Sequence record: NC_048821.1
Reading direction: 5' to 3' (one strand)
DNA length: 64,000 nt
Shown in pieces: positions 5,723-50,337 of the stretch. The position numbers and the translations under genes were made by a program. Numbering within the stretch: the first letter of the stretch is position 1; every line of letters starts with the position of its first letter. A model generated the notes under the pieces. It made no database searches. It was not told the DNA's origin and saw nothing but the letters and a program-made list of their open reading frames with translations.

Positions 5723-5725
5723 ACA

Positions 5726-7083: not shown

Positions 7084-7086
7084 GGT

Positions 7087-22490: not shown

Positions 22491-25400
22491 ATGGCAGGTA
22501 TTATCAGAGGGAACTTACTCGATGCTGAAGGCAACGAAGTAAACCCGGGTAAACCCGTCACATTAAAGGCCGTCCGATCGGACGGCCTACCTGATGTGAC
22601 TATCACGACCAATGATTCTGGTCATTGGTCCTTAGAAGTGAACGCTGAAGTCGACTCTCAGGTCGACTTCACTTTTATTTACAATGGGGTGGATGTAGGA
22701 GCACACGCAGTGCGTTTCATTGAAACAGCTGAAGTAGTAACCTTGCCGTATTCTAATTTCCGCGTTAAAGTGGGTAACACTGGTGTTATTGCATTTGCGG
22801 TAAAAGACGATCAAGGTAATGGGGTTCCGTATGCGGATGTAACTATCCACCGTGACGACGAAAACTCCGAACCAGTGACAACTCTAAGGACTGACCAATT
22901 TGGTATCGTCACTTATACGGTTCCGCCTCACAACGTTTATGAACGTGTGGGGTTCTGGGCTAAGTCTGGAGGCACTACTGCGTTTTGGGGTGTTCAGTAC
23001 GAAGATGGGGAAGAAGAGTTTGCTATTTCAATGGCTAACTTCCATTACACTGAGCAATTAGGTTTGGGTAATGAACTATTAGTCATGGGCGGTGGTAATG
23101 ACCCTTGGGGATCGTTAATTTACAACCCACCTAAAGTTCTTTTTAATAAAGACACTCTGACTGAGGTCACTTACACCGAGATCTCTGATGACTTAACCAA
23201 CAACGTATTCCTAACAGTCGCGGGGTTATCTGAAGGTAATCACAACTTTGTGTTTGCAATGGAATCCGAATACCGTGAGTTTGTTGTTGAATGTGGGGAC
23301 TTCCAAGAAGAAACCATTAACACAGTAAAGCGCCATTACCCGACAGCGACCAAGTTTTTTGTAAACATGTGGTCAACGCTGGAAGCGACAGTTCAAGTGG
23401 ATGGTGTGGACTATAAGCCTCACGGCGTAGTTTACATGACCGTTGAGAGAAACGAAGATTCGATACAATCTTTGGTTTGGCCTAATGGTAAATTCGGTTA
23501 TCCTGTTTCTGGTAAAAACGGTGACGTCTACCAATACACCATTAAGAACGGTGACGCGGAAGTTCTGGCAGAGCATCCGGCTTACGTCGTTGATGGTAGT
23601 GTAAAACTTTGTGAATACTCAGTGGATACCCTCCCTACCTTGGGCAAGGGCACAGTTGCGTTCGCTATTGTTGATGATGAAGAGAAGCCAGTGACTGGCG
23701 GGTTTACTCTCGTTAACCCTGGAACCAATGCATCTGAACAAGTTGAGGTTACTGACGAATTTGGTATCGTTGAAGTAGAAGTAAGTCGTGCTTCAGGTGA
23801 GAATGAAACATTCGTGTTGTGTAGTATCGGTGGGTTTGCTAGTGTGAATCACAAAGTTACCTTCACTGGCGCTCCTGTGGCTTCTGAGTTCCGTAACTTG
23901 GATATCCCAACACAAGGTGATACTGAGACTCCTATCACTGTAACAGGGCAAGTCTACGACCAAGGTGGAAGTGCATTTAAACCACCTCGATTGGGTGTGT
24001 TTGATAAACAGAGCTTAACACATCAAGCATTCGACGCTTCTCTTATCGGAAGTGACGGTACGTTCTCTTTTGAGTATGGTCCTTTGTCACAAGGTCAACA
24101 CGACCTCGTCTTAGGTTCTTCAGGTATCATCTCTGAGAAACGCACACATTGGTCCATTGGTTTCCCTGATGGTCTTCGCACCGAACGCATGAACTACTCC
24201 ACATACCCTAACGCTTATGTTGGTGACGACGCTATTGTGGCAGTCCGTGCAAGTATCGTAGAAGACGGGTTACTGGTTCCTGTTGTCGGTGTTCCTGCGA
24301 CAGCTTACATCAATGGCCCTGGTGTGACCGACGTTGAACTGGAAACTAAGTTAACTGACGCTAACGGTATTGCGGAATTCAACATCCCGGCTTCAGTCAA
24401 TGAAACTACCTTAAACGGCAACTACGCCATCACGATGGTGGTCGGCCCTAACGTAGTTAGAACTGACATTACTTGGTTGGAAGGTTCTGATGTAATATCA
24501 GGGTTTAGTGACTTGGATTACAACCCGACCATTAATACTGGTGGTGAACTGGTTTACACCTACCGTCCTTTAAACCAAGACGGCCAACCAATGGCGGACC
24601 GTGGCGTTTACGTGACTCCGATAGATCATTTCCAGATTGGTGCTTACAATGCTACCATTTATGAAAATGCTGACGGGTCCTACACTGCGGAATTCCCAAC
24701 AATGGAAGACGGGACTTACGACGTTGTATTCCATTCAGGAAACGCTCAGGAACGCATGTCATTGACTTGGGGTGCGTATCCGGTAATCAACCCTACCTCA
24801 GTACTACTTGACTTCCTATCACCTACCTCTGGTGTAGTAGGAAGTGACGCTATTGTGTCGGGTAAGATTGTGGATGAGAACGGTAGTGTGATCCGACCTA
24901 CCGCTGGAATGCGTTTAACTGTTCGTGATGAAACTGGCTCAGAAATCCACGTTAGGGTTAAACCTGATGGGTCTTGGTCATTCGCTGCGAACTCCACCAT
25001 CGCTAAGACTAAGTCTTACAACATCCTGCATAGCGGAACAAACCTCTATGTTCATCAGATCGATTTCCATGAAACTCCTACGGTTACTTTCACCGACTAC
25101 ACTGGTGACAAAGTCGCTAAGACTCACGAGGCGATGTTAGCTACTGTGGTTAAGGATGTGGATGGTAACGGCATTCCAGGGATGTTGGTGGAGTACAAGA
25201 ACGATGACACTCACTACGGTTCAGTAATCACTGATGAGTTTGGTATCGCGGAATTCACTATTCCGTTTAACCTAGAGACCATCGTTTCCCCTACAGTAGA
25301 ACAGGATTATGTTGTTGCTCATATTAGCGACACTATCTCTGATGACGTTACTGTTCGTTGGGCAGGTGATGATGAAAACTCCGCAATTGAAATCATTGAC

Positions 25401-28400
25401 TTGGTGGTGGACTCGGATGTGTACGAAGGTACCACCGCTACCATCACTGGTAGGTTGATCGGTTCATTGGGTACGAACGATAACGCTTGGATGTGGTTAA
25501 CAGTCTTTAACAAGACAACGCTGGAAAGTAAGATGTTCAATAACAACATCATGCTGGACGGCACGTTTGAGATCGAAGTGGGTCCTTACCCTATGGGTCT
25601 TAACCAATTGGTTATTGCAACCAACAGTTACACCACTCCTATTTCGTTAGAAGTTACAGAAGCGCCTATCGTGCTTAAAGAACTACGCACACTTCCTTAT
25701 TCAACCAGTAAGGTTAAGTCTGCTGGAAGCGCTACGCTTGCCTATGCTGCTATTAACTCTCTAGATAAGGCAATGGTGGGTGAAACTGTAGAACTACGCT
25801 TAGCGAGCGATACAGGCATCCTGTTGGACACTGTAGTGACCGACAAATACGGTATTGCGGAATTCACTGTTCCAGACAACGAAAGTACACCGAACACTGG
25901 TGACGTTACGTACGTTGCTGTGAGTGGTGAGTTCTCAGCTCAGTCGACCGCATCTTGGGGTGAAACTGGTGTTGTAATTGAATCCCTAGATGGGTTCGAG
26001 GCAACTGGGTTGGTTAGTAGTGGGGCTAAGGGTGTAATCAAACTGAGTCCTTTGAGTAAGCTTGTTTACGACTCAGGTTCTTTTGCACAAGACCCTAATG
26101 GTAAACTAACTCCTTGGGAGACCATGACGCATGTCCGTGGTGCCACAATTAACGTCTTTGATAAAGTTACGTTGACTGCGATCCCACACAGTCGTGTGAA
26201 TGTTGACGTTGACGTAGGCGGTGAGAAGTTTGACATTTACACAGTCGACGCTCTTCCAGATGGTTTCTACGATCTAGTTGTTTACTCAGACAACGCAATC
26301 GAAACAGCAACCATGACTTGGGACACTGAAACTGAACTAGCGAAGCCAGATCGTTTCGTATTAACAAACAGCATTACTACAGCGTTTGTACAAAACGACA
26401 CAAACCAATGGTTGGATGGTGATGTTCAGTCTACGTCGGGTCCTGCTTTTGAACTGACGGGTTACGTAGAACCAGTAATGGTTGGTTCACAAGAACACCC
26501 AGTTTGGATCACACCTAAAGGACGATTCGTGACTAAACTGAGCGAACCTCGTTCTGAAGGTGTTCATTCGTACGACTTTAAGGTTGACGGGACAGTGGTG
26601 GATACGAAGACTATCACGTTCTACGATAGCCTTAACGTAGAGCTACTTCCTTACACCACCCCTAACCCAGTTAAGGGCAAAGTTGCGACTATCGCAGCTG
26701 TAGTTAAAGACGGTAGTGGTGAGGTGGTTCCGGGTGCTTGTGTGACACTTACCCCGGGTGCACGTATTACTTACGAACACTCAGTTAACCTCAATAGTGA
26801 CTTTAATGGTTCTGTTGAAATGACGTGGGAGTACGACGAAGCTTATCCAGAGTTTACGTTAATCACTGGTTGTAACGGTAAGCGTAATGGGGAACGACAA
26901 CTATTACGTTGGGTTGAATCTCCTGAACTCACTGGGGATAGTTTTGAAACACTGGTTGTGCCTGAGAAAGTGGTTGGGGATGACAAAGCAACGATTACTG
27001 GTAAGATCTTAGATCAAGAAGGTAATCCTTACGCTAATGGTGAATTGTTGGTTTACAACAAAATCACTATGACGTCAACAGACCTTACTACAGCCATCCA
27101 GCCAGATGGGACGTTCTCTACGGAATTGGGACCTTACCCATTCAACGCTTATGAGTTAATCTTCGCGACTCGTGGTAACGTAGATCGTCGTACGGCAGTA
27201 TGGGGTGGTAGTGGTATCTTAGCAAGTATCGAAATTGATCCTGATAGCGGCACACGTGGTCTATTAGGTGATACGGTTGAGATCTTTGGTAGTTCCACGG
27301 ATACCATCGGGACACCCTTCACACCAGATGAAGGCATTTACACTCTGGATGTTGTGAATGACAAAAACGATGATGTTCTTCCAACGGTAATCGATGCACA
27401 AGGTAACTGGTCCTTTAATGCGACTCATGACGTAAGTGAAACGGTCACGTATACCTTTAAAGATGGCGAAACAGTCCTAGCGACTCATGCTGTTGAGTTC
27501 TTTGAAGGCGCAGGCACTTTACGTAACTTCGACGCCCCTAGCACGGTTAAGGTGGGTCTGAATGAAGACTTCACATTAACGGGTAAAGTGTACAACACCA
27601 TGAACAAACTTTACCGACCAATCGTTGAAGAATTGTTCACACTGGTGCTGGATGAGACTACTGAGTTCCAAGGCACGATTCATACTGACGGTACATTCAG
27701 CGTGAAGCCGACGAACGATAAAGTGGAAACTCAAAGCTTCACCTTTAAGGTCGGAGAAGACACTTACGACACGGTAGACATCAAGTGGTGTCAGACTGTA
27801 AGCTTAGCGTTTAACGCAGACTCTCAACCTAAAGCTGTTGTCGGTGATGATGCTTATGTGTCAATCCGAGTGGTGGATGAGAACGGTGAAAGCGTTACCG
27901 GACGCACAGTGGAGTTCTATGAAGGTGAAGTCACAGGTGAACCTCTAGATACTGAGGACGTCTACAGTGAGACCTACATTGGTTACTGGCCTAAAGAAGC
28001 CACTGAAGTGGGTGACGTAGTAATCACTGCTAAGTTGGGTGGTATCCAAGATACCTTGACGCTGTCTTGGGTAGGTAACGATCCTAAGATCGCGGCTGGA
28101 TTTGGTCGTAAGACCTCAAGAACTGGTTACGTGGTTGACACTAAACCGGCTTCTGGTACGACAGCAACACTACGAGGTACAGTTGTAGACCAAGACGGTA
28201 CGCCGTTAGCAGGCCCGCAATTCCTTAAAGTGTTTGATCAAGGGTCGTTTGACTTAACGGATTACTCTGCACAAGTTCAGGCTGATGGTACGTTCGATAT
28301 CGAACTCCCAGTCAAACCAGATGGTACTTACAACTACAGTCTTGTTACTGAAGGCAATGTGGGTTCTATCAGAGGTATTTCTTGGGACGCGGAAAACGAA

Positions 28401-31400
28401 GACCTGAAAGCGGTTAAGTTGGATGCGAGTGTTCCTACTCAGGTTAACGTTGCTAGTACACATACTCTCCAAGGTACTATCTTGGATAGCGCCGGTGACA
28501 CCATTGCTCCAGCTAAGAGTATTACGGTTTACGTAAACAGTAGTGAAGGTAACACCTACGAGTTCACAGTTACACCGGACGGTACATGGTCGTTTGCTTA
28601 CACCTTTAGCAATGAAGGGGATGTGTTGTTCGACTTCCACACTTACCAAGGTAAGTACTTGGGGTCTGTCACCATCACGGTTGAAGAAGCAGCGCCGGTA
28701 TTCACTTCTATTGAGTGGGTTGGTGAACAACCTACAGAAGGGATGGTCGGTGAGTCTGTGAAACTGACTGCGGTTACTTTAGATCAATACGGAAATCCGA
28801 TCGATGGCGTTTCGGTACGACCATTCATTAATGGTGAGCCACAAAACGCTTTCCGTTCTCCTCCGGGTGGTTCTTGGAGTCTGGATTACACTTCAACTGA
28901 AGCAGGCCCAGTACTTTACGAATTTGGTTGGGAACCAGACGTTGCTCGTATTGGGCATACTGTTGAGTGGAAGCTTCCAGTGGATTCAATCGAGGTCATG
29001 CGTTATTCTGACTCTAACGCAGTACCGGGACAAACCGCGTTTGTACCTTTCGCTGCACTAGATAGTTCAGGTAAGGGCATTGCGGGTGTTCCTATTGCTC
29101 TTCACTTGGATTCAGCATCAGGAACGTTATTGACCACGGTAACTACCAACGAGTTTGGTATTGCTGAGTTCAGCGTTCCTCAGAAAGGAAGTAACGCTAA
29201 CCGTTTGATCTACGCTAAATACGGCGATATTGTAAAAGAGCGTCGTCAATGGTGGGCTAACGATCCACTTACACCTCCAACTGGATTCGCTAACTTAACG
29301 GTTACTAACCCAGTACCTGAAGGTGAGCGCGCACTAGTTAGTGTTCAAGCAGTAGCAAGTGACGGTAGTCCTCGTCCGTTGTCCACGGTAGGCATCTTTG
29401 ATCCGGAAATATTGGATCAGGTATTATTTAACCGTGTAACCACTGGTGAGTCTAAATCTCACTTACTGGACTTTGCGCATAGCGGAACAGGAACTAAGAC
29501 TTACATCTTAACTACTGACGCTGGTCGTCAAGAGTTCTCGGTGACATGGGAAAGTAAACCGGCAGTCACGCCAAACGACTTAGTGTTCGACGCGGATTCT
29601 CCGGAATCATTAGTAGTGGGTGAATGGAACACGTTAAGCGGTAAATTAGCGGTAGACGGGGTTCCAGTAACTGAACTGGATCACTACGTTAAGGCGACAA
29701 TGACTGTGGGTGGTAAGGAGAGCTACCTAGACTTGGATGTTAGCAAAGGGACGTTCCGTGTACTGGTTAAACCAACAGCGGCAGGAACAGAAAACTACGA
29801 CTTCAAACTTAATGGTACGAGCGTTGTGGTAAAGTCCTTCCGTCACAGTGACAACGTGACGTTAAACGACGTGAGTGTGTTATCGGTCACCACACCTCAG
29901 ATAGGTGACCCTGTGGTACTGAGTACTGTAGTGAAAGATAGCGAAGGGAACCCTATCCCTAAACTTCCGGTGACGTTTAAACTAGCCGGCGGGAACACAC
30001 TCGCAACATTAAACACGGACGTCAAAGGAATGGTAACACATTCAGTGCCTTACCAATCCGGGACAATGTCTTCTGACTTTGAAATTAAAGTGGGAAGCGT
30101 CGTAGAAACAGTAACGGCAACTTGGAAGCCAACTAATGAACTTATCGACGTGGCGTTTGAAGGGCTAACTACCCCGGCAACGGTTTACGATGGTGAATTA
30201 GCGAAAGTAACAGGTAAGTTAATCAACCAACAAAACAATGGGACATCAACAACTAAGTTTGAGATTTACCATCGTGGGTTATTAACGCACACCAGTCATG
30301 CCACCGATGTACAGCCGGATGGTACGTTCGACTTTAATATTGGTCCGTTTGCAGTAGGGGTGAATGAGTTCTACTTCATCATCAACGGTAAACGCATTGA
30401 ACGTAGCATCGAGTACATTGAACGCACTGACCCAGAACTGAATCGTGTTGAGTTAGATGAGGGTAATCCTACGTCAGGGTTCTCTGGCGAAAACTTAACC
30501 ATCAGTGGTAAAGGTTACGATCAATACGGTGATCCAATTGCAAACGCTCAGGTTCAATGGGCGATCTCTGGTGATGCACAACCTGCATTAACCACAGGTC
30601 CAGATGGTTCATTCAGCACAACAGTTACGCACAACACCAACGCTAGCATCACCTACCGATTCGGTGGCAATGATGGTATACCGGTGGCTAACTTGAGCAT
30701 TGCGTGGACCGTAGCGACATCAAACACGATGGCGTTTGTTGGTACATCGCAATGTAAGCAAACTCAAAACAACGAGGCTAACATTGAGTTGTACGTGAAA
30801 GACCAAGACGGTGTTGGAGTTCAAGATGCTCAGATCGTAATTAGAGATCAGGGTTCAGAAACTCCTATTGCGACACTGACAACTAACGTACGTGGTTTAG
30901 CGTCTTACGCTATCCCTTATGAAGCAGGTAACGATAACCGTACTATCGAAGCGACTCTGGATCAACTGACCGAGACGTTAGACATTACGTGGTATCCTGC
31001 GGTGACTAAGTATGCGACCGGGTTTACTCGTCTCTACATGGATAACCGCCCTGCTTCAGGAAAATCAACGACAGTACGTGGTCAGTTAGTTGATCAAGAT
31101 GGCAATCCAATCACAACGGCTTCAACGTTGGGTATCTTTAACACGATTACCTTGGAGAACTATGATTACATCGATCGACTACAACCAGACGGTACGTTTG
31201 AGTTTGAGTATGGTCCTGAGGCTGACAGTAACTACCCTATCTCGCTCTTCACCGATGCTGGTCATTTCGATGAAACGATCATTTGGGATTTGAATAACGC
31301 TGACATGAAACGTGTGGTGTTTGACAACAACATTCCTAGAATGACGAAGAGTAACGGTAGAGTTAGTCTGCACGGTACGTTTGTGGACAGTGATGGTAAC

Positions 31401-33074
31401 CCATTCACTCCGTTGTCTAATACCGCGTGTACAGCCACTGGGGATAATGGTGACGCCTTTACGGGTACCATTAAAACGGATGGTACGTTCGAAGTTGAAG
31501 TATGGTTCCCTGAGTACCGTACTCACAAAGTCGACATATCAGCACCAGATAAGACTTACCTAGGAACTTACTCTCTGGTAGTGACCGCAGACAACATCAT
31601 TGATGAAATGCCTTACTCAGCTAACGTTGCAACCACGGGTCAACCGGCAACAATGGCAGTGAAAGTCGTGAACCAAAGTGATGTTGCGGTAGAGGACACT
31701 GTAGTTACTGCTCACTTGGGTGACCCAAGTAATCCGGCAGTGGTGACAGCGAACACCGACGCCAGAGGTATTGCGACCATGAATGTTCCGGCTCCAGCGG
31801 AAACAGGTAAAACGACGGTCTACTTTAAGAACGGTACTTCGGTACTTGACGCAGAGGTGGATTGGAAACCTGTGGAAGAATTGGTCGGTAAGACATTCGA
31901 AGATGTTGTGACGTCATCTCCAGCTGAATACGGCCAACCAGCTACAATCAGTGGTAAGCTGTTAGATCAGAACGGGGACGTGTTACCGGGTCGTAACCTT
32001 GGTGTGTATCACTTGAACGGAGGTACGTTGTTGAATACCACTGTAGTGAAGAACGATGGAACAGGGTTTACTCTGGAAGTTGGTCCTTTAACTACAGGAA
32101 CACATCAGTTAGTGTTGTTCACGGGTAATGCTGAACGTTATGAAGAGATTACATGGAACGTGGAAATTCCTCCTATTGGAAAACTAGAAACGGTCTCGTT
32201 CTCTTCAACGAAGGCCCCAAGTGGTCAACCTGCCAAAGTTCACTTCTACGTCCTTGCACCTAACTACGGTCGCGTCAAAGACGTTCCGGTAACTGCACGT
32301 TGGGGTAATGCTCAGGGTGAAGTTATTGCAACAGAAATGACGAACTCTGAAGGCTTGGTAAGTTACACCTTACCGGGAACGAATGAGTCTGGTGATCGAC
32401 TAGGCACACATACGGTTTACGTTGAAGTTGGTGGTAAGTCCATCACGGATACCGTGGAGTGGGTGGACGATGAATTGATCGGTGAATCCATCATTGAAAT
32501 CGACAACATGCAGAACATCGAATACGGGGAGAAATTCCTAGTTCGCATGACGGTCAGAGATCAAAACAACGAACCTATCCGTAATCCGGGATACAGTCTG
32601 TTCCAACCTAAATCTCGTCAAGAGGTTATCAATCTGGTTCGAATCGACTACCCGGGTGATGATGTGGTGTTCCAAGCAACCGCACAATCAAGTTCAGTAA
32701 CGGAGTTGTATGTGGGTACTGATAATGACTATCGTGTTATCCCTGTTAACTGGGATTACGCTAACGACATCATTAAACCAGTGACCGCAGCGATCGATGT
32801 TGATGTTCCTGAGTATCATCCTGTGGGTGTTGACTCAATAGTGAAAGGTAAAGTGCTCGACACCAATGGTTTAGAGTTCCGACCAACCACTATACTGAAG
32901 CTGAAAGCACGTCGTGTTAGCGATAATTCAGAAACTGAGTTGACGGTCATGCCAGATGGCGAATGGGCGTTTGTTGTGAACGAACCTACTGAGTCTGAAG
33001 TAGTGTACAAGTTAATGTACGGCAACGTAGAATTAATGGAATACACGGCTAAGTTCGGTACTCCTGCAAGCTAA
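22491..33074 (+). CDS. Giant Ig-like (Big/invasin-type) repeat protein, 3527 aa; probable virion fibre/adhesin
   Basis: About 12 super-repeats of roughly 290 aa containing TD(E/K)(F/Y)GI.EF, G.(L/V).DQ.G and DG(T/S)(F/W) motifs; rich in Thr/Val/Gly/Asp/Glu. Confidence 0.8.
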   Translation: MAGIIRGNLLDAEGNEVNPGKPVTLKAVRSDGLPDVTITTNDSGHWSLEVNAEVDSQVDFTFIYNGVDVGAHAVRFIETAEVVTLPYSNFRVKVGNTGVIAFAVKDDQGNGVPYADVTIHRDDENSEPVTTLRTDQFGIVTYTVPPHNVYERVGFWAKSGGTTAFWGVQYEDGEEEFAISMANFHYTEQLGLGNELLVMGGGNDPWGSLIYNPPKVLFNKDTLTEVTYTEISDDLTNNVFLTVAGLSEGNHNFVFAMESEYREFVVECGDFQEETINTVKRHYPTATKFFVNMWSTLEATVQVDGVDYKPHGVVYMTVERNEDSIQSLVWPNGKFGYPVSGKNGDVYQYTIKNGDAEVLAEHPAYVVDGSVKLCEYSVDTLPTLGKGTVAFAIVDDEEKPVTGGFTLVNPGTNASEQVEVTDEFGIVEVEVSRASGENETFVLCSIGGFASVNHKVTFTGAPVASEFRNLDIPTQGDTETPITVTGQVYDQGGSAFKPPRLGVFDKQSLTHQAFDASLIGSDGTFSFEYGPLSQGQHDLVLGSSGIISEKRTHWSIGFPDGLRTERMNYSTYPNAYVGDDAIVAVRASIVEDGLLVPVVGVPATAYINGPGVTDVELETKLTDANGIAEFNIPASVNETTLNGNYAITMVVGPNVVRTDITWLEGSDVISGFSDLDYNPTINTGGELVYTYRPLNQDGQPMADRGVYVTPIDHFQIGAYNATIYENADGSYTAEFPTMEDGTYDVVFHSGNAQERMSLTWGAYPVINPTSVLLDFLSPTSGVVGSDAIVSGKIVDENGSVIRPTAGMRLTVRDETGSEIHVRVKPDGSWSFAANSTIAKTKSYNILHSGTNLYVHQIDFHETPTVTFTDYTGDKVAKTHEAMLATVVKDVDGNGIPGMLVEYKNDDTHYGSVITDEFGIAEFTIPFNLETIVSPTVEQDYVVAHISDTISDDVTVRWAGDDENSAIEIIDLVVDSDVYEGTTATITGRLIGSLGTNDNAWMWLTVFNKTTLESKMFNNNIMLDGTFEIEVGPYPMGLNQLVIATNSYTTPISLEVTEAPIVLKELRTLPYSTSKVKSAGSATLAYAAINSLDKAMVGETVELRLASDTGILLDTVVTDKYGIAEFTVPDNESTPNTGDVTYVAVSGEFSAQSTASWGETGVVIESLDGFEATGLVSSGAKGVIKLSPLSKLVYDSGSFAQDPNGKLTPWETMTHVRGATINVFDKVTLTAIPHSRVNVDVDVGGEKFDIYTVDALPDGFYDLVVYSDNAIETATMTWDTETELAKPDRFVLTNSITTAFVQNDTNQWLDGDVQSTSGPAFELTGYVEPVMVGSQEHPVWITPKGRFVTKLSEPRSEGVHSYDFKVDGTVVDTKTITFYDSLNVELLPYTTPNPVKGKVATIAAVVKDGSGEVVPGACVTLTPGARITYEHSVNLNSDFNGSVEMTWEYDEAYPEFTLITGCNGKRNGERQLLRWVESPELTGDSFETLVVPEKVVGDDKATITGKILDQEGNPYANGELLVYNKITMTSTDLTTAIQPDGTFSTELGPYPFNAYELIFATRGNVDRRTAVWGGSGILASIEIDPDSGTRGLLGDTVEIFGSSTDTIGTPFTPDEGIYTLDVVNDKNDDVLPTVIDAQGNWSFNATHDVSETVTYTFKDGETVLATHAVEFFEGAGTLRNFDAPSTVKVGLNEDFTLTGKVYNTMNKLYRPIVEELFTLVLDETTEFQGTIHTDGTFSVKPTNDKVETQSFTFKVGEDTYDTVDIKWCQTVSLAFNADSQPKAVVGDDAYVSIRVVDENGESVTGRTVEFYEGEVTGEPLDTEDVYSETYIGYWPKEATEVGDVVITAKLGGIQDTLTLSWVGNDPKIAAGFGRKTSRTGYVVDTKPASGTTATLRGTVVDQDGTPLAGPQFLKVFDQGSFDLTDYSAQVQADGTFDIELPVKPDGTYNYSLVTEGNVGSIRGISWDAENEDLKAVKLDASVPTQVNVASTHTLQGTILDSAGDTIAPAKSITVYVNSSEGNTYEFTVTPDGTWSFAYTFSNEGDVLFDFHTYQGKYLGSVTITVEEAAPVFTSIEWVGEQPTEGMVGESVKLTAVTLDQYGNPIDGVSVRPFINGEPQNAFRSPPGGSWSLDYTSTEAGPVLYEFGWEPDVARIGHTVEWKLPVDSIEVMRYSDSNAVPGQTAFVPFAALDSSGKGIAGVPIALHLDSASGTLLTTVTTNEFGIAEFSVPQKGSNANRLIYAKYGDIVKERRQWWANDPLTPPTGFANLTVTNPVPEGERALVSVQAVASDGSPRPLSTVGIFDPEILDQVLFNRVTTGESKSHLLDFAHSGTGTKTYILTTDAGRQEFSVTWESKPAVTPNDLVFDADSPESLVVGEWNTLSGKLAVDGVPVTELDHYVKATMTVGGKESYLDLDVSKGTFRVLVKPTAAGTENYDFKLNGTSVVVKSFRHSDNVTLNDVSVLSVTTPQIGDPVVLSTVVKDSEGNPIPKLPVTFKLAGGNTLATLNTDVKGMVTHSVPYQSGTMSSDFEIKVGSVVETVTATWKPTNELIDVAFEGLTTPATVYDGELAKVTGKLINQQNNGTSTTKFEIYHRGLLTHTSHATDVQPDGTFDFNIGPFAVGVNEFYFIINGKRIERSIEYIERTDPELNRVELDEGNPTSGFSGENLTISGKGYDQYGDPIANAQVQWAISGDAQPALTTGPDGSFSTTVTHNTNASITYRFGGNDGIPVANLSIAWTVATSNTMAFVGTSQCKQTQNNEANIELYVKDQDGVGVQDAQIVIRDQGSETPIATLTTNVRGLASYAIPYEAGNDNRTIEATLDQLTETLDITWYPAVTKYATGFTRLYMDNRPASGKSTTVRGQLVDQDGNPITTASTLGIFNTITLENYDYIDRLQPDGTFEFEYGPEADSNYPISLFTDAGHFDETIIWDLNNADMKRVVFDNNIPRMTKSNGRVSLHGTFVDSDGNPFTPLSNTACTATGDNGDAFTGTIKTDGTFEVEVWFPEYRTHKVDISAPDKTYLGTYSLVVTADNIIDEMPYSANVATTGQPATMAVKVVNQSDVAVEDTVVTAHLGDPSNPAVVTANTDARGIATMNVPAPAETGKTTVYFKNGTSVLDAEVDWKPVEELVGKTFEDVVTSSPAEYGQPATISGKLLDQNGDVLPGRNLGVYHLNGGTLLNTTVVKNDGTGFTLEVGPLTTGTHQLVLFTGNAERYEEITWNVEIPPIGKLETVSFSSTKAPSGQPAKVHFYVLAPNYGRVKDVPVTARWGNAQGEVIATEMTNSEGLVSYTLPGTNESGDRLGTHTVYVEVGGKSITDTVEWVDDELIGESIIEIDNMQNIEYGEKFLVRMTVRDQNNEPIRNPGYSLFQPKSRQEVINLVRIDYPGDDVVFQATAQSSSVTELYVGTDNDYRVIPVNWDYANDIIKPVTAAIDVDVPEYHPVGVDSIVKGKVLDTNGLEFRPTTILKLKARRVSDNSETELTVMPDGEWAFVVNEPTESEVVYKLMYGNVELMEYTAKFGTPAS

Positions 33075-33083
33075 TGTAAAGTA

Positions 33084-33116
33084 ATAACTCAGGTGGGTTA
33101 GACCCACCTGAGTTAT
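33084..33116 (+). terminator. Intrinsic terminator
   Basis: 15-bp perfect stem ATAACTCAGGTGGGT-tag-ACCCACCTGAGTTAT followed by CTTTATTTT. Confidence 0.85.
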
Positions 33117-33221
33117 CTTTATTTTCCACTTATTTAAACCCCACTGAGAATTTATTGAACGAAACGCGTAACTGGGTTCTCCCTTGGCCCGGTGTGTATA
33201 ACAAGCAAAAGGAAGATACTA

Positions 33222-36200
33222 ATGACGGGTGTTATTAGAGGAAACTTGTTGAAAGGTGACACGACGGTAAAACCTGATGGACCCGTCAGTCTTACCTTGA
33301 AACGAGACGATGGACTTCCAGATACGGAAGTCGTAACTGATGCTGATGGTAACTGGCAAGTCGAGGTTGAGTCGGCAACGAAAAAGAAAGTCAAATTTAG
33401 TTTCTTTGACAAAAGCAAACCGCTTGGTGAACACGAAGTGGAGTTTGTCAAGGAATTGGAAATCATTCCTGCATCCGGTCGATTCACTAAAGAAAACCTG
33501 AATGGTTTCCACGGTCGATTAATTGATCAAGATCTGAATCCGATCTCTGATGCGGAGATCACTTACAAACGTAAGTACGACGACGCTGAAAACTGGATCG
33601 AAAGCAGCGTCACAACAAACGAACACGGTTACTTCAACGTAATGTGGGGGATTAACGAACTGGAGCCTAAGAAGCTTTACATTCAAATCTCGTACGGGGA
33701 TTTGAGTGATGAGTTTACTTACGACTTTTCTGATGGTTCTTTAACCACTTATTTTGTTGACCCTGTGGGACAAGAAGAGTTAGCCCCGGGTGAGACCTTG
33801 AAAGTAGTCGGACGTGCATTCCCGAATTACGGTTCAGGTGACGTTAACCTCACCGAGGATGCGTTCCTTGGTCACTTTGTGGACAACCCACTTTATTTCG
33901 TGGATAACAGTGAATCATTAGAGAGTGGCGGTAAGTTCTCCATCGATGTGGATGGGACACACGCCACTTTAATGAGTAACAACGGTAACCTAGAAGTAAA
34001 ACCACCTGTGGTTCAGGGGTTAAAGCCGCCCGCGATTATGCGATTTGGTGTACGCAGCGTGCTTATCAACAACCCGGATCTGCATTACAGTGGAAGTTTC
34101 CCACTTACTTGCTCGGTGTATACAGCGGATTACAAAAAGCCGAATGTGGATTCTAGTGAGTTGGAATTCTACGATTTCAATAACTCCCCGCATTCTTACG
34201 GCAGTTACCTGACAGAAGGTAATGACCGTTGGTATGCTGGTGAAGACTTTGTTAGTATTCGGGAAGGTGGGTATAAACACACAGTACTTTGTCGTGGCCG
34301 ACCACTAGCCGATAATTACGTCCGCTGTTTTACTGACGGTGATATGCTTAACTTGGTAGGCGGCACTAGAAACTGGGTCCATGTGGGCAACGAAGTCGTA
34401 AACCGTCTTGCGTTGACTGACAACCAAGGAAATCCAAGATCGGGAGTAACGGTTTCTTTCTTCAAAGGAGATTCGGAAACAGCGTTCCGTCAAGCAACCA
34501 CAGACGACCTAGGTTTAGTGGAAATCACGCTCCCTACGGAGAGTGAAGTAACTCGCACCTTTATGCGTGCAGAAGCAGATGGTGTTGAAGCAACATGGTA
34601 CAATGACTGGGTCCCAGTCACACTAGAAGTTGTAGAGAGTGTTTCTACACCTTTCCTTCCGGTTTATTTTGACCGAGATTTCTTCATGTTTTTAACTACT
34701 CCTTTGGGTAAAGATGGTCAACCATTTAACCCTCAGGACAGTGGTGTATACGAAGGTCTCACGATTCAGTTATTAGACCGTTGGTACGTTCGTCCTTACC
34801 TCAGTAAGCGCGATGGGGCTTGTGAATACCTCCTTCCACTACAAGACGATACCAACCCAATTAAAGGCGGTCGGTTATCTATGACCTGTGACCACTTCCA
34901 CACAGAAAAAGATGTCGTGGTTGGTAAGCGTGTGGGATTAAACCCACTGCCTTACGCTCAGGGAACAAGTGTTGCTAATCAAGACCTAACCACTGGGTGG
35001 TTGTTGTTGGACGACGCTCTGGAACCAGTAGAAGGTGGTGTGATTGATGTCTGGATCGATGATCGAAGTGGTGCAGTAGATCATAAACTAACCACCGACA
35101 AATACGGGATTGTGGAAATCACAGTTCCTTTTAAAGAAGGTGAGTTGGTACGCAAAGCTTACGCTAAACACGGGACGGATCAATTTGAACTAGAATTGAT
35201 GTGGACTGAGAAAAACGCAGCTTGTCAAATTACGATCACTCCTCCTCAAGGTGACATCGGTGTCGATGAACTCGTCACGTTTGACGTACGTTCGTTAGAT
35301 CAACACGGTAACGAAGTTAATGAAGAATCCCCAGTTCTCTTTAACATGTATGGCTTCTCTAACCTCGGTGTTTACGACAAAGTCACACACAAAGTCGAAT
35401 ACCTTGGGTCAGACCGCACTACCGATGTAAACGTACAGACTAACGATAAAGTTGGTGAGCAAGAGTTGGTGTTCTTTACCGAAGCTGGATTTAAAACGGT
35501 TAAGTTCAATGCCATCCAACGTCCGGTTCGTAATACAGATCGCTTAGAGTACAGCTCGAGTACCGCATTCCCTGATTCTGAAGCCTTGGTCGGCTTCCGT
35601 GTTTCTGATGATAATGGGCAAGGTGTTCCGGGTGAAACTGTCGAGATTCGATACTTAGGTGAAGAAGTCGATAAGTTAGTAGGCAATACTTGGATTAAGG
35701 TTCACGAAGGTGGGTCTGACGAAGTCATCACAACTTTGACTACGGATGAGTTCGGTATTGTCGAATTCCCTACCACCATGCCAACGGATACCGGAACTCA
35801 TAGCTGGAGTGGTACAACGGTAAGTGCGGGTCCTAAAGACAGAAAGGGTAAAACAGACGTTTACGTCCATTGGCGTGACGGGATTATCACTGACCTGAAG
35901 AATGTGAAGTCGATCCCGGTTACCGAGTCGGGTGAGAAAACGGTGTTCTCCGCAGAGTTGTGGGAAAACGTCAGTGCTGACAACCAAGTCATCACTGAAG
36001 ACAACATGCACATTCACGTTTACATAAAAGAACTAGATCGTACTCTAGAGAACACGGGCACTTTCTATAAGGGTCATAAAGTTTGTTCAATAGATGAGGT
36101 CTTACCGGACGGCACATACCACGCGGTACTCTATGTTCAGAACGCACAACACGAGGTTACTTTATCGTGGGGTTCTGTGGCAGGTGTTAATCCGACTTCA

Positions 36201-39200
36201 TTGGTTTACAACAACTTTGTTCCTAAGAAGTTCCCTATTGGTGCGCGTTACATATCTTCGGTCAGCCTTAACGATGATGACGGTAAGATTACTGCAATGA
36301 CTAGAGCGGTTAATGTAGAGGTTTACAACTCTGACAACCAAGTCATGGGCGAAGGTGTAATCGATGTTGATGGTAACGGTCGCATCCAATGGTCTACCAA
36401 CTACGGTACTCCGAACCCAATCGAAACGTATGAGTTCCGAGATGGTTCAAAGGTGTTGTTCTCTATGACGGCTGGTCTTGTTACGTGGCCTAAGATTAAG
36501 ATGACTCCTTACAACCTAACCAACCCGGTTATCGGTCAAACCATTACCGTTGGCGCGTTTGTTGAGAACGAGGAAGAGACGGAAGCAGTAGATGGCATCT
36601 ATGTGACGATGGAAGACAACTACGGTAACTTGCTTGCTGAAGGGGAAACGGATGAATTCGGTTTCTTTGACATCAGCTATGACCGTATTGGAGAAGAGTC
36701 ACATATGTTCGTTCGAGCTAAATGTGGTCAAAGTTCTAACTATGAGACCGCTCCTTGGACTGACACCAACTCACCTCGTTGGGTAGACTTGCAGCTCACC
36801 AACCCACCAACTAGCGTGGATAACGACGGAAGTGTCTTCATGAACGGTATGATGCGGGATCAGGATGGTAATCCTGCTGACCGTGTTGCTTACAGCGTTT
36901 ATGATGTTCGTAACCGTAGCAGTATCGGTGGTCGTAGTAAATCAGACGGTCGCATCGAACCTTCCTTGGACAACATTGCATTGGGTAAAAACCCTGTCGT
37001 TGTAACTAGTGCCAACGGGATGGTTAGACATGTGGTCAATTACAAAAAGATGCCGGCGTCTGCTGATATCGTAAGTGGTCATAGTGAAGCCATGGCCTTT
37101 GATGGCAATCCTGAGGTCACTTATCAGCTGAAGGATAGTGAAGGGAACAACTACGTGCCTAACGAGGGCGAGGTGGTAAACTTACTTACTCAAAGCGGGC
37201 GCTACCAGAAACACGGCACCCCAGTAGGTCCGACGGGTTTAGTTACGATGCCTTGGTTCAGTAAAGGTATAGGGCATGAAGTCTACATCCTTGCTAACGA
37301 AGACATGTCTAAGGCTCTCAACACCACGCCTACTGAGCACATTGCGATTAAGGAAGTTAAAGTATTCCACGCTAGTGACTACCCTCAGTCTGGTGACCCG
37401 GGCATCATGTTGGCAAACGTTCAAGACTTTAACGATAACCCTATCCCTAATATCGAGTTCCGTGTGAAAAGCACTACCGATGGTTTCGAGTTAGATGCGG
37501 TTTACAAAACTGATGCCAACGGTGTTGGTAAGGTGTTGTTAGCCGGCCAGTCTGACGGAACAAACATCTCGGTCGAATTGACCTGTGGTAATGCAGTTAC
37601 AAGCTACTCTATTGGTTGGGAAGATGGAGGTGAGTCTAGTCCCGGAACGGTGATTTTAGATGCATTACCTTCGGAAGCTTCGGAAGACGACAATCTTCCA
37701 ATTACAGGTAAAGTTGTTGATAGTGAAGGGAATGGGATTAGTGACGCGTTCGTTTACTTGTACATAGGGACGCCGAATAGTACCTATTACCAAGAGGACT
37801 CTGTTAACGCGGATGCCGATGGACGTTTCTCTATCACCCCTTGGCTGGAATCAGGAAACCTCAAGTTCCTTGTAGTTAACGGGAACGACTTTGATAGTGC
37901 CGAAGTATTGTGTTACTCAACACCTATGGTTACTATGACTAACCTCACTATTCGTGATATTCACGAAAATCAGCGTGGTCGTGTCTCTGCCCTCTATAAG
38001 GACAGATACGGTAATCCGGTCCAAGGTGAAACTGTTGAGTTCCGATTTGACAGCGCAAGTGGTGAGTTAATAGATACCAAAACCACTAACGAGAAGGGTC
38101 ATGCGTGGACTGAAGTTACTTGGACGCAAGCACAAGGACACAGTGAGATTTACGCTGTTTGTAATGAGGCATCGGACTCTACCTACATTAATGTTGCAGA
38201 AGCGGGTGATGTCGCTCCAGTGGTTTCTACTATCGCTTGGCACAACAATGTTGGTTTCGTTCATCCAGAAATGCCAGCACTGATAATGGGTAAGGTATTA
38301 GACCAACACGGCAACCCGTACTCTAAAGCGGAGGTGAACTATTATCGTCCTGACATCGGATCAAGGAATATGACTTATACTGACTCAGATGGTAACTTTA
38401 CCTTAGAGGTCAGTCCGGGTCGTTTCGATCCTACCCGTAAGGATTTGTTTGGTGTACGTGGTAAGTTTACTGAGATCGCTCCTAAGTGGAACATGGGAAC
38501 CAAGTTCAAGTCTGGAGCTATTAAGTTTAACAAACCTGATTTTCCTGAAGGCATTCCATACGACTCAACCATCACCTTATCCGGTACCGTAAAAGATACC
38601 GATGGAAGCATGGCTGAAGTGGGTGACGCTGTAATTAAACTGAAGGCGCGCGTTCGATCTGAAGGTTCGGAGCTAGGGTTGAAAGAGTTCACGGTTTCAC
38701 CTGACGGTACTTGGTCTGTTGACATCCCAACGCCGGATAAAGAAATTAAGTTCGATGTCTGGTTGGAAGATGAATACGGGAATGGTTGTGATCGTGTCGC
38801 ACTTTGGGCAGGTCCACCTAAGACCAAGACACTAGCGTTTGCTCCACCTACACATGACTACATCCCTGAAGGTCAGAATCATACACGAGTGGTTTACTAC
38901 TTGCTGGATGAAGAAGGCAAACCTATGCCTAACGTATCCATCGACTTTAAATATAAAGGCGATGCTGATTCTCGTTGGAATTATGGTTCAATGGATCGTA
39001 CGGATGAAGATGGTCACGTTAACACCCGTATTCAGTTACGCAACAGCACGACTATTGAGTTACGTATTAAAGCTGAAGGGTTAACGACCAAACACACTAT
39101 CGTCAGAACAAGTGATCCGGTCGGCACGAACTTAGTTGGGGTTTATTACCCAGACTCAACCAGTGTCTCTCGTGGATTAACTGGTTGGGCTAAGTTAACT

Positions 39201-40874
39201 GACATTAGCGGTAAAGCGATCCCTGACCTTAGTGATGTGAAGGTTGGTATCTACGACCTTGTGACTAGGGAAACATACGACCTGAAACCTTGGATGTTGG
39301 ATAACATCAACATTGCCTATAACTTTAATCCGCCAGCTGGCAGACATCGCTTCATGCAGTACTCCGACGCTTACATGGACTACTACCAAGTTCCTAAGGT
39401 GGTAGAGGTGACCGAAAGTGATCCTTCTGAGGTGGTAGTGCCTACGCAGGTAGTGTTATCTCCGACCATAGAAAACGGTGGTCTTGTGACACGGTCGAAC
39501 ATGAACATTAAAACGGGATTCCGTTTAGTTGACGACCAGTACCGTGATTGGAATGCAACTGGCGAGGTAAATGTTTACGATGATTACGTTGGGCTACTGC
39601 GTGAGACCAAATCAGAGGGTGAAGTTCATCAGGTTCAGATATATGATCCACTCGATCCTGGTTTACGCACTTGGCGTGTGTTCGCTGACTACAAAGAAGT
39701 TGGCACAATCCCAATCTTCATTGTGGAGGGTGACGACGTTATGAACTTGGTACCGGGATCTACTGTAGTTAACCGAGTGGATCAAACGGCGGTTGCGATG
39801 TTCGGTTGTTATTCAGCGACTAACATGACCCCTACTGTCGGTAAAACAGTAAACGTTTGGGAAGTTGGAAAGGAAGGAGCTAAACTGAGTCTAACCACTG
39901 ACGATAGAGGATTAGTTGCGTTTGACTTACCGGCACAAACCACACCGGGTGTTTACCACTACATAGTGGAGTACGACGGTAATCAAGTGCCGTTCGACTT
40001 CCATTGGGTAGCTGCGGATATGGTATTGGGTGAAAGCTTTGGTGAGACATTCTTCCCGACTGTATGGGCTGAAGAAGAGTACCAAGGGTTCAAGGCCGAG
40101 GTAGTCGACCAGAACGGTGACGTCGTAAGTAACGGTGTGAAAGGTATTTCGGTTAAGGACCTTGATGATCCTGAAATGAATTACTGGTACAACATCGATG
40201 GGGAATATGTGAGACCAGCTTACTTTACTAAGGGCAAACACTTAATTGGCATGTCGGCTGGTGCGGTAGCTGAGACGTTTAACATCTTCAGCGGTAATGC
40301 TACTGGACTCCGTACTTTGGCTTACGCTCAAGGTAAGGGTCTGGATGGTCAGAACCTGAAGGTGGCGTTTGGTCTAACTAACGAATCATTCGTACCGATT
40401 AACGGTGCAGTGGTTAAAGTGTGGATAGGAGAGAAATCAGGTGATTCTCATTACGAGGTGACTACTGGTACTTACGGTATCGCCGAGTTTGACATTCCTC
40501 AGCCTGAGGGTGTGACACGCACTTGGTTGTACGCGGAATCAAATGGTCATGAGTTGAAGATACCGGTTGTTTGGGCTAAGAAACCAACACCAAGTAAATT
40601 CAGCACACTGACAGTTCCGACTTCAATCCCGGCAGGATCTACGCTGGACTTCTCTGCAACGATTGTTAACCAAGATGATACGCCAGATAGCATCGATAGC
40701 TGGAAAGCTATTCATGGTGGTGTGTACGTTAAGGCTAACCAGAAGTTTGAGTACTTGTTCTCAGCGTCTGGCGATCATTCGTTAAACATCATTGGTGATC
40801 TATCACCGGGTACTCACGAAATTGTGTTCTTCACATTGGCTGGGTACGAGGTGAAACAAATCACTATCACTTAA
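33222..40874 (+). CDS. Second giant Ig-like repeat protein (~2550 aa), paralogue of 22491..33074
   Basis: Start reassigned to ATG 33222 (RBS AGGAAG); N-terminus MTGVIRGNLL parallels MAGIIRGNLL; about 10 TD..G repeat motifs. Confidence 0.8.
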   Translation: MTGVIRGNLLKGDTTVKPDGPVSLTLKRDDGLPDTEVVTDADGNWQVEVESATKKKVKFSFFDKSKPLGEHEVEFVKELEIIPASGRFTKENLNGFHGRLIDQDLNPISDAEITYKRKYDDAENWIESSVTTNEHGYFNVMWGINELEPKKLYIQISYGDLSDEFTYDFSDGSLTTYFVDPVGQEELAPGETLKVVGRAFPNYGSGDVNLTEDAFLGHFVDNPLYFVDNSESLESGGKFSIDVDGTHATLMSNNGNLEVKPPVVQGLKPPAIMRFGVRSVLINNPDLHYSGSFPLTCSVYTADYKKPNVDSSELEFYDFNNSPHSYGSYLTEGNDRWYAGEDFVSIREGGYKHTVLCRGRPLADNYVRCFTDGDMLNLVGGTRNWVHVGNEVVNRLALTDNQGNPRSGVTVSFFKGDSETAFRQATTDDLGLVEITLPTESEVTRTFMRAEADGVEATWYNDWVPVTLEVVESVSTPFLPVYFDRDFFMFLTTPLGKDGQPFNPQDSGVYEGLTIQLLDRWYVRPYLSKRDGACEYLLPLQDDTNPIKGGRLSMTCDHFHTEKDVVVGKRVGLNPLPYAQGTSVANQDLTTGWLLLDDALEPVEGGVIDVWIDDRSGAVDHKLTTDKYGIVEITVPFKEGELVRKAYAKHGTDQFELELMWTEKNAACQITITPPQGDIGVDELVTFDVRSLDQHGNEVNEESPVLFNMYGFSNLGVYDKVTHKVEYLGSDRTTDVNVQTNDKVGEQELVFFTEAGFKTVKFNAIQRPVRNTDRLEYSSSTAFPDSEALVGFRVSDDNGQGVPGETVEIRYLGEEVDKLVGNTWIKVHEGGSDEVITTLTTDEFGIVEFPTTMPTDTGTHSWSGTTVSAGPKDRKGKTDVYVHWRDGIITDLKNVKSIPVTESGEKTVFSAELWENVSADNQVITEDNMHIHVYIKELDRTLENTGTFYKGHKVCSIDEVLPDGTYHAVLYVQNAQHEVTLSWGSVAGVNPTSLVYNNFVPKKFPIGARYISSVSLNDDDGKITAMTRAVNVEVYNSDNQVMGEGVIDVDGNGRIQWSTNYGTPNPIETYEFRDGSKVLFSMTAGLVTWPKIKMTPYNLTNPVIGQTITVGAFVENEEETEAVDGIYVTMEDNYGNLLAEGETDEFGFFDISYDRIGEESHMFVRAKCGQSSNYETAPWTDTNSPRWVDLQLTNPPTSVDNDGSVFMNGMMRDQDGNPADRVAYSVYDVRNRSSIGGRSKSDGRIEPSLDNIALGKNPVVVTSANGMVRHVVNYKKMPASADIVSGHSEAMAFDGNPEVTYQLKDSEGNNYVPNEGEVVNLLTQSGRYQKHGTPVGPTGLVTMPWFSKGIGHEVYILANEDMSKALNTTPTEHIAIKEVKVFHASDYPQSGDPGIMLANVQDFNDNPIPNIEFRVKSTTDGFELDAVYKTDANGVGKVLLAGQSDGTNISVELTCGNAVTSYSIGWEDGGESSPGTVILDALPSEASEDDNLPITGKVVDSEGNGISDAFVYLYIGTPNSTYYQEDSVNADADGRFSITPWLESGNLKFLVVNGNDFDSAEVLCYSTPMVTMTNLTIRDIHENQRGRVSALYKDRYGNPVQGETVEFRFDSASGELIDTKTTNEKGHAWTEVTWTQAQGHSEIYAVCNEASDSTYINVAEAGDVAPVVSTIAWHNNVGFVHPEMPALIMGKVLDQHGNPYSKAEVNYYRPDIGSRNMTYTDSDGNFTLEVSPGRFDPTRKDLFGVRGKFTEIAPKWNMGTKFKSGAIKFNKPDFPEGIPYDSTITLSGTVKDTDGSMAEVGDAVIKLKARVRSEGSELGLKEFTVSPDGTWSVDIPTPDKEIKFDVWLEDEYGNGCDRVALWAGPPKTKTLAFAPPTHDYIPEGQNHTRVVYYLLDEEGKPMPNVSIDFKYKGDADSRWNYGSMDRTDEDGHVNTRIQLRNSTTIELRIKAEGLTTKHTIVRTSDPVGTNLVGVYYPDSTSVSRGLTGWAKLTDISGKAIPDLSDVKVGIYDLVTRETYDLKPWMLDNINIAYNFNPPAGRHRFMQYSDAYMDYYQVPKVVEVTESDPSEVVVPTQVVLSPTIENGGLVTRSNMNIKTGFRLVDDQYRDWNATGEVNVYDDYVGLLRETKSEGEVHQVQIYDPLDPGLRTWRVFADYKEVGTIPIFIVEGDDVMNLVPGSTVVNRVDQTAVAMFGCYSATNMTPTVGKTVNVWEVGKEGAKLSLTTDDRGLVAFDLPAQTTPGVYHYIVEYDGNQVPFDFHWVAADMVLGESFGETFFPTVWAEEEYQGFKAEVVDQNGDVVSNGVKGISVKDLDDPEMNYWYNIDGEYVRPAYFTKGKHLIGMSAGAVAETFNIFSGNATGLRTLAYAQGKGLDGQNLKVAFGLTNESFVPINGAVVKVWIGEKSGDSHYEVTTGTYGIAEFDIPQPEGVTRTWLYAESNGHELKIPVVWAKKPTPSKFSTLTVPTSIPAGSTLDFSATIVNQDDTPDSIDSWKAIHGGVYVKANQKFEYLFSASGDHSLNIIGDLSPGTHEIVFFTLAGYEVKQITIT

Positions 40875-40886
40875 TCATAACTAACT

Positions 40887-40920
40887 ATAACCGAGTAGGA
40901 CTTTCGTCCTACTCGGTTAT
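40887..40920 (+). terminator. Intrinsic terminator
   Basis: 15-bp perfect stem ATAACCGAGTAGGAC-tttc-GTCCTACTCGGTTAT followed by TTATGCA. Confidence 0.85.
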
Positions 40921-44187: not shown

Positions 44188-44223
44188 TATAACTCCTACC
44201 TCCCTAGGGAGGTAGGAGTTATA
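44188..44223. terminator. Near-perfect palindromic, probably bidirectional terminator
   Basis: TATAACTCCTACCTCCC-ta-GGGAGGTAGGAGTTATA between convergent terL and tmk. Confidence 0.8.
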
Positions 44224-50198: not shown

Positions 50199-50337
50199 TT
50201 AAAAACTAAGTGACATGTATTATATGTTACAAAACCTTTTTACCCCATTTTTATTGAACGGTTACTTTGTACTCTAAAATCTTGTTATTTTACCTGTTTT
50301 TTCATCGTTATTTTCACCCCTAAAAGTGAAAGGCGAT

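Follow-up and report, generated by a model that had tools for sequence, protein, structure and literature searches.

A proposed baseplate fibre module and split Ig-like joint in Photobacterium phage PDCC-1

In chaperone-usher pili, the neighbouring subunit contributes a strand to an incomplete immunoglobulin-like (Ig-like) fold, the missing strand being the C-terminal G and the donor an N-terminal extension. The tailspike sets of CBA120-like and G7C-like phages share an N-terminal anchor domain, with globular docking on trimeric spikes. Here, we compare with these and related systems three consecutive genes, gp186, gp187 and gp188, of Photobacterium phage PDCC-1, a phiKZ-like, nucleus-forming jumbo phage (Vibrio/Photobacterium). 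The genes lie in a stretch of 64,000 nucleotides (nt), hereafter the window, which is 100% identical to the PDCC-1 genome (NC_048821, 237.5 kb; Chimalliviridae, Gorgonvirinae, Aphroditevirus; window coordinates equal record coordinates minus 173508). Our preferred explanation, to which we assign as a whole a probability of about 45%, is that they encode a fibre module of the peripheral baseplate in which a split Ig-like joint, common to both giant proteins gp187 and gp188, would connect them to the anchor gp186. In nucleus-forming jumbo phages, no part of the virion has been resolved less well than the outer baseplate with its fibres, which are largely unmodelled in the cryo-electron microscopy structures of phiKZ and Goslar.

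In the type V pili of Bacteroidia (FimA/Mfa1), the C-terminal donor of one subunit replaces the N-terminal strand of its acceptor; donor strands occur on the anchor and stalk subunits and are absent from those at the tip (PMC13655056). The joint proposed here would have the same polarity and would likewise be non-covalent, with a C-terminal overhang (the tail) on gp186 and none on gp187 or gp188. This polarity and the lengths involved fit the gp186 tail, the similarity of which to the first Ig-like strands, A and A', is not significant. Several differences are also apparent: neither lipoprotein export nor proteolysis is involved, the first domain of each fibre (the N-module) starting at Met1 without the strand, and the PDCC-1 fibre is not a homopolymer, with one proposed joint per fibre and giant multi-domain chains as subunits. 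No sequence relationship of the PDCC-1 fibre proteins to type V pili was found. Relative to chaperone-usher pili the polarity is reversed: strand G is present in the N-module (residues 66-75), it is A/A' at the N-terminus that are missing, and the candidate donor lies at a C-terminus. Neither a chaperone nor an usher is present.

Within the same virus family, the DUF7941 filaments of Goslar (gp22/gp23) and phiKZ (gp126/gp127) are polymers in which a protomer of ~7 nm is repeated hundreds to thousands of times, with joints predicted as a continuous intermolecular beta-sheet; long and flexible, they have been proposed to aid host recognition at the peripheral baseplate (PMC13742148). The PDCC-1 module would share with them the proposed site and a head-to-tail joint, but belongs to another protein family and consists of a few giant chains of Ig-like repeats, and no DUF7941 was detected in gp186, gp187 or gp188 (Pfam, E up to 0.01). 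As in the CBA120-like and G7C-like sets, alternative host-binding proteins would combine a conserved N-terminal attachment part with variable distal parts, the difference being a proposed split beta-sandwich on monomer-like Ig strings.

The anchor and the two giant proteins

The features on which the argument depends are listed below, with matches obtained from hidden Markov models (HMMs) where indicated.

17696..22480, plus strand: gp186, the anchor (1594 residues), with a gp26-like baseplate domain, an Ig-like stalk and a 24-residue overhang
17870..19399, plus strand: gp26-like domain of gp186, residues 59-568 (phmmer against PDB)
19448..22405, plus strand: Ig-like stalk of gp186, residues 585-1570 (repeat HMM matches)
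22406..22477, plus strand: 24-residue C-terminal overhang of gp186 past the last complete repeat, proposed A/A' donor
22491..33074, plus strand: gp187, giant fibre 1 (3527 residues), C-terminal overhang absent
22491..22724, plus strand: N-module of gp187, residues 1-78, starting at strand B (103.3 bits, N-module HMM)
33222..40874, plus strand: gp188, giant fibre 2 (2550 residues), Ig-like repeats and four unmatched beta-rich stretches, C-terminal overhang absent
33222..33455, plus strand: N-module of gp188, residues 1-78, starting at strand B (112.5 bits, N-module HMM)

The anchor gp186 falls into PHROG 3430/27497, 'virion structural protein' (PHROG 3430, E 1.2e-140), and its residues 59-568 align to residues 35-544 of the 552 in PHIKZ026 (PDB 9xqd_a, phmmer E 1.3e-47). 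It is thus homologous over nearly all of phiKZ gp26 and has the same neighbours. Whereas gp26 ends at 552 residues, gp186 adds an Ig-like stalk of ~1000 residues and the overhang, and such extended forms were found only in the phage clade to which PDCC-1 belongs. The stalk comprises eight repeats detected by HMM, or about ten judged by length, with Pfam traces of Big_1 and CarboxypepD_reg. The phiKZ protein, whose location in the outer baseplate is known, cross-links this structure as a 'fiber attachment platform' built with gp27; its termini reach neighbouring proteins, the C-terminus inserting into gp157 and gp130/gp139, and its five copies per star lobe imply ~30 per virion (PMC13250141).

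Counted from the conserved tryptophan position in strand G of the last repeat, the overhang is 24 residues long. At the sensitivity of tblastn the tail is single-copy in each genome, with one tail type, and no second tail-like segment was found elsewhere in the genome. It is 100% identical in PDCC-1, Aphrodite1, USC-1 and phage 5 TSL-2019, in which the adjoining last 300 residues are 76-83% identical, and between PDCC-1 and phage 2 TSL-2019 its last 15 codons differ at 7 nt and at no amino acid. These comparisons indicate that the tail is under purifying selection. A single gp186-gp187 protein made by frameshift or read-through was ruled out: they are two polypeptides, because stops close both frames between the genes and gp187, which starts 10 nt past the gp186 stop, has its own ribosome-binding site.

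Both giant proteins consist almost entirely of Ig-like repeats, which in gp187 account for 3241 of the 3527 residues. Scores for gp187 and gp188 are 107.3 and 121.4 bits with Big_1 (cut-off 34.9), and 65 and 71.5 bits with CarboxypepD_reg (cut-off 32.3). An earlier note on this DNA had described the 3527-residue protein as ending on a complete domain with no donor tail; its chain does stop 5 residues after the conserved position in its final strand G, and in gp188 strand G is itself the end of the chain, so that both lack a donor strand in the manner of terminal subunits. The gp188 start was placed at the ATG at 33222, 7 nt downstream of an AAGGAAG ribosome-binding site, a longer frame opening with GTG at 33192 not being conserved among relatives. 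Relative to phiKT1019, identity is 58% for gp187 and 24% for gp188 over the whole proteins, and 81-86% for the N-modules. Current annotations of these genes read 'hypothetical', 'putative invasin' or 'TonB family protein'. Four stretches of gp188 (33744-34364, 34602-34955, 35793-36512 and 39126-39758) matched neither the repeat HMMs nor any Pfam family, and the specific binding domains of gp188 may lie there.

A shared first domain that starts at strand B

The N-termini of gp187 and gp188 are paralogous, as had been noted before, with 33% identity over 127 residues (BLASTP E 1e-14). An N-module HMM built from the first 80 residues and scanned against the six-frame translation of the window identified two copies of the module, at the starts of these two proteins, and scored at most 25.8 bits elsewhere, internal repeats included. 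This gap (112.5 and 103.3 bits versus at most 25.8) marks the N-module as a distinct subfamily and not merely another repeat. When the profile was compared to 1.84 billion representative proteins, 36 were matched, 15 of them at the family level; in all 15 the module sits at residues 1-18, at the extreme N-terminus, and none has a leader, strand B running directly from Met1. The remaining matches were partial, to repeats of bacterial adhesins.

The claim that this N-terminus lacks the first strands holds relative to the proteins' own repeats. Residue 4 of gp187 corresponds to position 24 of the 102-position HMM derived from 23 internal repeats. An AlphaFold2 model of an internal repeat (gp187 1478-1581; 23 paralogues aligned; predicted local distance difference test score, pLDDT, 93.1) has eight strands, namely A (5-12), A' (16-18), B (23-31) and five more, while that of the gp188 N-module (17 homologues; pLDDT 73.2) has six main strands (2-8, 23-28, 35-38, 44-50, 55-63 and 66-75), of which B, at 2-8, comes first. 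Within the fold of the N-module, the least confident parts are strand B and the final stretch of G, the edges along which A and A' would lie. Foldseek returned only generic Ig-like matches for the internal repeat (SbsC, CARDB, filamin and InvE; template modelling (TM) score ~0.6), and for the N-module invasin 1cwv (TM 0.62), with nothing at E <0.05.

Conservation within the N-module is concentrated in two places. Mean pairwise identity is 61% in strand B and 78% in an R-x-D-G-x-P-D loop (78% and 86%, respectively, when gp187 is compared to gp188), as against 29-44% for the other strands, and the loop is both invariant and confined to N-modules. These shared hot-spots match the prediction of a common socket. 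We regard the N-module as probably an attachment module. A covalent, SpyTag-like isopeptide joint is unsupported, the N-module having no invariant lysine. A class of 'short' N-modules without strand B, paired with B-containing overhangs, was also considered and rejected upon alignment, since several short forms retain a B-like strand and only the hairpin is shortened.

A proposed split Ig-like joint weighed across lineages

To compare the ends of anchor and fibre with ordinary repeats, junction length was measured from the conserved position in strand G of one repeat to the conserved strand-B glycine of the repeat that follows. Across 151 consecutive internal junctions it is 29.4 ± 1.8 residues, with a mode of 30. 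The strand-B glycine is residue 7 in both gp187 and gp188, and the 24 residues of the tail plus the 7 of the fibre start give 31 residues (30 if Met1 is removed), i.e., the length of one junction. In the proposed module, gp186 would be seated in the baseplate through its phiKZ-gp26-like domain, and its stalk of about ten Ig-like domains would project outward and end in the 24-residue orphan segment. gp187 and gp188, adhesin-like strings of Ig-like domains, would each carry a dedicated attachment domain, the N-module, without A/A'. The orphan segment would lie as strands A/A' against B and G of an N-module, such that the two polypeptides would be joined head to tail, non-covalently, through a split Ig-like domain, with gp187 and gp188 each forming the terminal fibre on a gp186 stalk. 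We put the odds that such a strand-complementation joint with the gp186 tail exists at about even. What the analysis shows directly is the domain layout, the homologies, the conservation, the junction lengths and the joint occurrence of overhangs and fibres across lineages; inferred from these are a plausible physical joint, plausibly with a single type of tail for gp187 and gp188 alike, and the display of both on the virion. The joint would represent a variation on a known principle of strand assembly, backed by sequence comparison, structure prediction and lineage distribution that agree with one another.

The same arrangement recurs among relatives. Five Aphroditevirus-like lineages (the PDCC-1 group, phage 2 TSL-2019, phiKT1019, the 244-kb ENA metagenome scaffold L016 and the Logan contig L018) encode a 24-residue tail with a common motif followed, 10 nt on, by a fibre starting at strand B, so that a tail length of 24 recurs in five diverged lineages. 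Overall, an overhang-bearing anchor together with strand-B-start fibres was found in eight lineages. In the Tidunaviruses VP4B and pTD1 the anchor overhang measures 59-61 residues and is followed by four N-module proteins, the first of which itself ends in a 66-residue overhang; in phiKT1028 an overhang of 69 residues is followed by five N-module proteins. The more distant L017, with an anchor 65% identical, has an overhang and a single fibre of 1826 residues whose first domain is unrelated and also starts at strand B. The sole anchor found without an overhang is that of another Logan contig (L019, 1958-8113), which has the gp26-like anchor and the Ig stalk, with the terminase gene directly next and no fibre genes. 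In these genomes, overhang presence thus tracks the presence of strand-B-start fibres. A scan of IMG/VR for further relatives returned known isolates only, the new lineages coming from protein collections.

Some of these relatives show additional features of overhangs. In VP4B (L002 16800-16987 and 22080-22276) and pTD1 (L003), the anchor and the first fibre each end in two tandem orphan head-like units, and some Tidunavirus orphan units contain a B-like strand. A one-to-one rule of overhang units to acceptors fits VP4B and pTD1 (4 and 4), and was rejected because phiKT1028 and PDCC-1 break it. In L016 (10001-25490), fibre 1 (3712 residues) itself bears a 24-residue terminal overhang, and the next gene, 16 nt on (1444 residues), begins within the A'/B region of an ordinary repeat and without an N-module; this constitutes a second kind of split junction, the lengths of which (24 + 18) do not sum to one junction.

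Several observations weigh against the split-domain joint. Against HMMs of the A/A' (and A/A'/B) head the PDCC-1 tail scores 0.0, which 17% of random 26-mers equal (p 0.17), in a test of low power because the A/A' region is weakly conserved; the longer Tidunavirus overhangs do score as A/A' (p <=0.008). Both the Pfam CarboxypepD_reg model and the solved SusC N-terminal domain (PDB 9hfj) begin at the equivalent of strand B, so a sandwich without strand A can be complete, and the R-x-D-G-x-P-D loop may be a different binding site, or the true interface. By analogy with phiKZ, the gp186 tail could retain a gp26-like role of insertion into other baseplate proteins. Overhang units and acceptors are unequal in number in phiKT1028 (~2-3 versus 5) and PDCC-1 (1 versus 2). 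Finally, no virion proteome, fibre image or description of such fibres was found in the literature for any Gorgonvirinae phage.

Part of this evidence would be expected if the N-module were a self-sufficient beta-sandwich (prealbumin/CarboxypepD_reg-like), docking by its conserved loop on another baseplate protein or on the side of the gp186 stalk, with the tail acting as a linker or cross-linking end and the absence of A/A' merely reflecting the start of the chain. The strand-B starts of CarboxypepD_reg and 9hfj, the invariance of the loop, the lack of significant A/A' likeness in the tail and the insertion of the phiKZ gp26 C-terminus into gp157 and gp130/gp139 all point in this direction, as does the fact that the N-module still folds in AlphaFold2 (pLDDT 73). 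Left unexplained, however, would be a tail of exactly 24 residues in five diverged lineages, the sum of tail and fibre start equalling one junction, the absence of fibres beside the overhang-less anchor of L019, and the unrelated L017 fibre that also starts at B after an overhang-bearing anchor. A self-sufficient module is an explanation that we consider unlikely, if far from negligible.

If the split-domain joint is retained, it could serve one fibre or both. gp187 and gp188 would be alternative terminal fibres because the same module occurs in both and an overhang in neither, and we rate the sharing of the gp186 tail by both as a little short of even odds. It could instead be that only gp187 joins the tail, through co-translational assembly from one mRNA, and that gp188 binds elsewhere without any competition. 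This would fit the constant gap of 10 nt that separates the stop of gp186 from the start of gp187 throughout the five Aphroditevirus-like lineages, the hairpin that precedes gp188, the occurrence of the gp187 type only in L016, and the dissimilarity of the two modules outside strand B and the loop. Yet strand B, the would-be donor-contact edge, is where the two modules resemble each other most (78%), tblastn detected no further tail-like segment in the genome, and gp187 is itself without an overhang. We hold an exclusive gp187 joint to be improbable. The 10-nt spacing to gp186 may favour gp187 over gp188.

How the two fibres would be distributed on a virion depends on the number of anchors. 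The earlier note had both fibres compete for a 'single donor tail', which is accurate in that there is one per anchor chain and one type per genome, but the phiKZ homologue of the anchor is present in ~30 copies per virion (PMC13250141). A virion with ~30 anchors would bear a mixture of both fibres, and this number, expected by homology, makes the mixed display that had been suggested more likely than an either/or switch. Altogether, what that note observed is confirmed in the sequence, and the interpretation it put forward is partly supported.

Ig-like repeats occur in capsid decoration proteins too, and gp187 and gp188 could in principle be capsid or tail decorations, or non-virion proteins, instead of baseplate fibres; nor does the literature offer a proteomic sign of their virion association. 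In every relative, however, their genes stand directly behind the gp27 and gp26 homologues, and they occur where the anchor has an overhang. Frames of 7.6 and 10.6 kb have also remained open while their distal parts evolve fast, a pattern typical of proteins that contact the host. We hold a role outside the baseplate to be very improbable.

A broader version of the split-domain joint, which we put forward only tentatively, is that across the Gorgonvirinae a split Ig-like domain would act as a universal plug and socket for one to five interchangeable giant fibres, with the orphan strand units borne at the C-terminus of the anchor, and in some genera also of the first fibre, yielding a mixed or branched adhesin 'tree' set by gene content and expression. 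The overhangs borne by Tidunavirus fibre 1 are suggestive of such branching. If true, no donor-strand-type joint would have been described before for the attachment of phage tail fibres. The short list of strand-complementation assemblies (chaperone-usher pili, type V pili, TasA and archaeal threads) would gain a member from phages, and it would become clear how proteins of 2500-3900 residues are attached to the virion. It would also provide a rule readable from genomes, in which a C-terminal orphan strand unit pairs with an N-terminal strand-less module, so that fibre sets become predictable.

Hairpins, transcription and the surrounding genes

Expression of the two fibres may be separated by elements in the interval between their genes.

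33084..33116, plus strand: terminator-like hairpin after gp187, its perfect 15-bp stem capped by a 3-nt loop and followed by a T-rich tail (CTTTATTTT)
33117..33221, plus strand: 105-nt spacer before gp188, with conserved blocks and a ribosome-binding site (aligned with two relatives)
40887..40920, plus strand: terminator-like hairpin after gp188, sharing the ATAAC...GTTAT base of the one at 33084-33116

The 15-bp terminator and intergenic stretch of about 100 nt reported earlier correspond to the perfect stem at 33084-33116 and the 105 nt that separate it from the ATG. This hairpin, one of just seven within the 64 kb that have a perfect stem of 11 bp or more, is kept in relatives by two compensatory pair changes, and comparative evidence indicates that it is real and selected. 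Three of the seven strongest perfect hairpins (33084-33116, 40887-40920 and 44188-44223) have a common stem base, ATAAC...GTTAT, also seen in the hairpins behind the VP4B and phiKT1028 fibre genes, and such a hairpin stands behind every fibre gene in relatives. The ATAAC...GTTAT hairpins may represent a family-specific terminator or processing signal.

A sigma-70 promoter scan of the spacer returned nothing, a result of no relevance here because the phage has its own RNA polymerases. Late promoters of phiKZ need a TATG, the G being the start site (PMC4666361). A TATG is found at one aligned position ~25 nt before the gp188 start in USC-1, Aphrodite1, phage 2 TSL-2019 and phiKT1019, and there is none in the PDCC-1 spacer (33117-33221), where one base differs at the relatives' aligned site. 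If the motif applies to the subfamily, gp188 expression in PDCC-1 may consequently rely more on read-through than in relatives. The idea that separate transcription sets the fibre ratio is weakened: the hairpin is borne out, but signs of a separate promoter are few, the motif being missing in PDCC-1 itself.

The fibre genes belong to a tail and baseplate block with the same gene order as in phiKZ, i.e., homologues of tube, sheath, gp28, gp27 and gp26.

11050-11949, minus strand: tail tube (Phage_TTP_14)
11955-14093, minus strand: tail sheath
preceding gp185: gp184, homologue of phiKZ gp28 (PhiKZ_VTX)
15142..17724, plus strand: gp185, homologue of phiKZ gp27 and Goslar gp220, peripheral baseplate scaffold (Pfam DUF7193, 1059 bits)

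The assignment of gp185 is also reflected in its PDB matches (11pb_C, E 7.9e-69; 9xqd_G, PHIKZ027, E 3.4e-43), and the scaffold role of phiKZ gp27 and Goslar gp220 in the peripheral baseplate has been described (PMC13250141, PMC13742148). Downstream, the order is gp185, gp186, gp187, gp188 and gp189. The last of these (40963-44175) is the large terminase (PHROG phrog_2, E 6.9e-55), as annotated in relatives; its RefSeq name is 'DarB-like antirestriction', and in the phiKT phages it is called 'ATP-dependent DNA helicase'.

Two further regions of the window stood out. At 4377-7656, five back-to-back open reading frames of similar size (189-238 residues) have no Pfam match, and the same array is present in phage 2 TSL-2019 and phiKT1019. 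At 50200-50652, a 453-nt non-coding stretch after an HNH endonuclease gene contains short direct repeats (GGGGCAAGGTGATAG twice and GGGTGTCAAGGTT twice) along with AT-rich palindromic runs.

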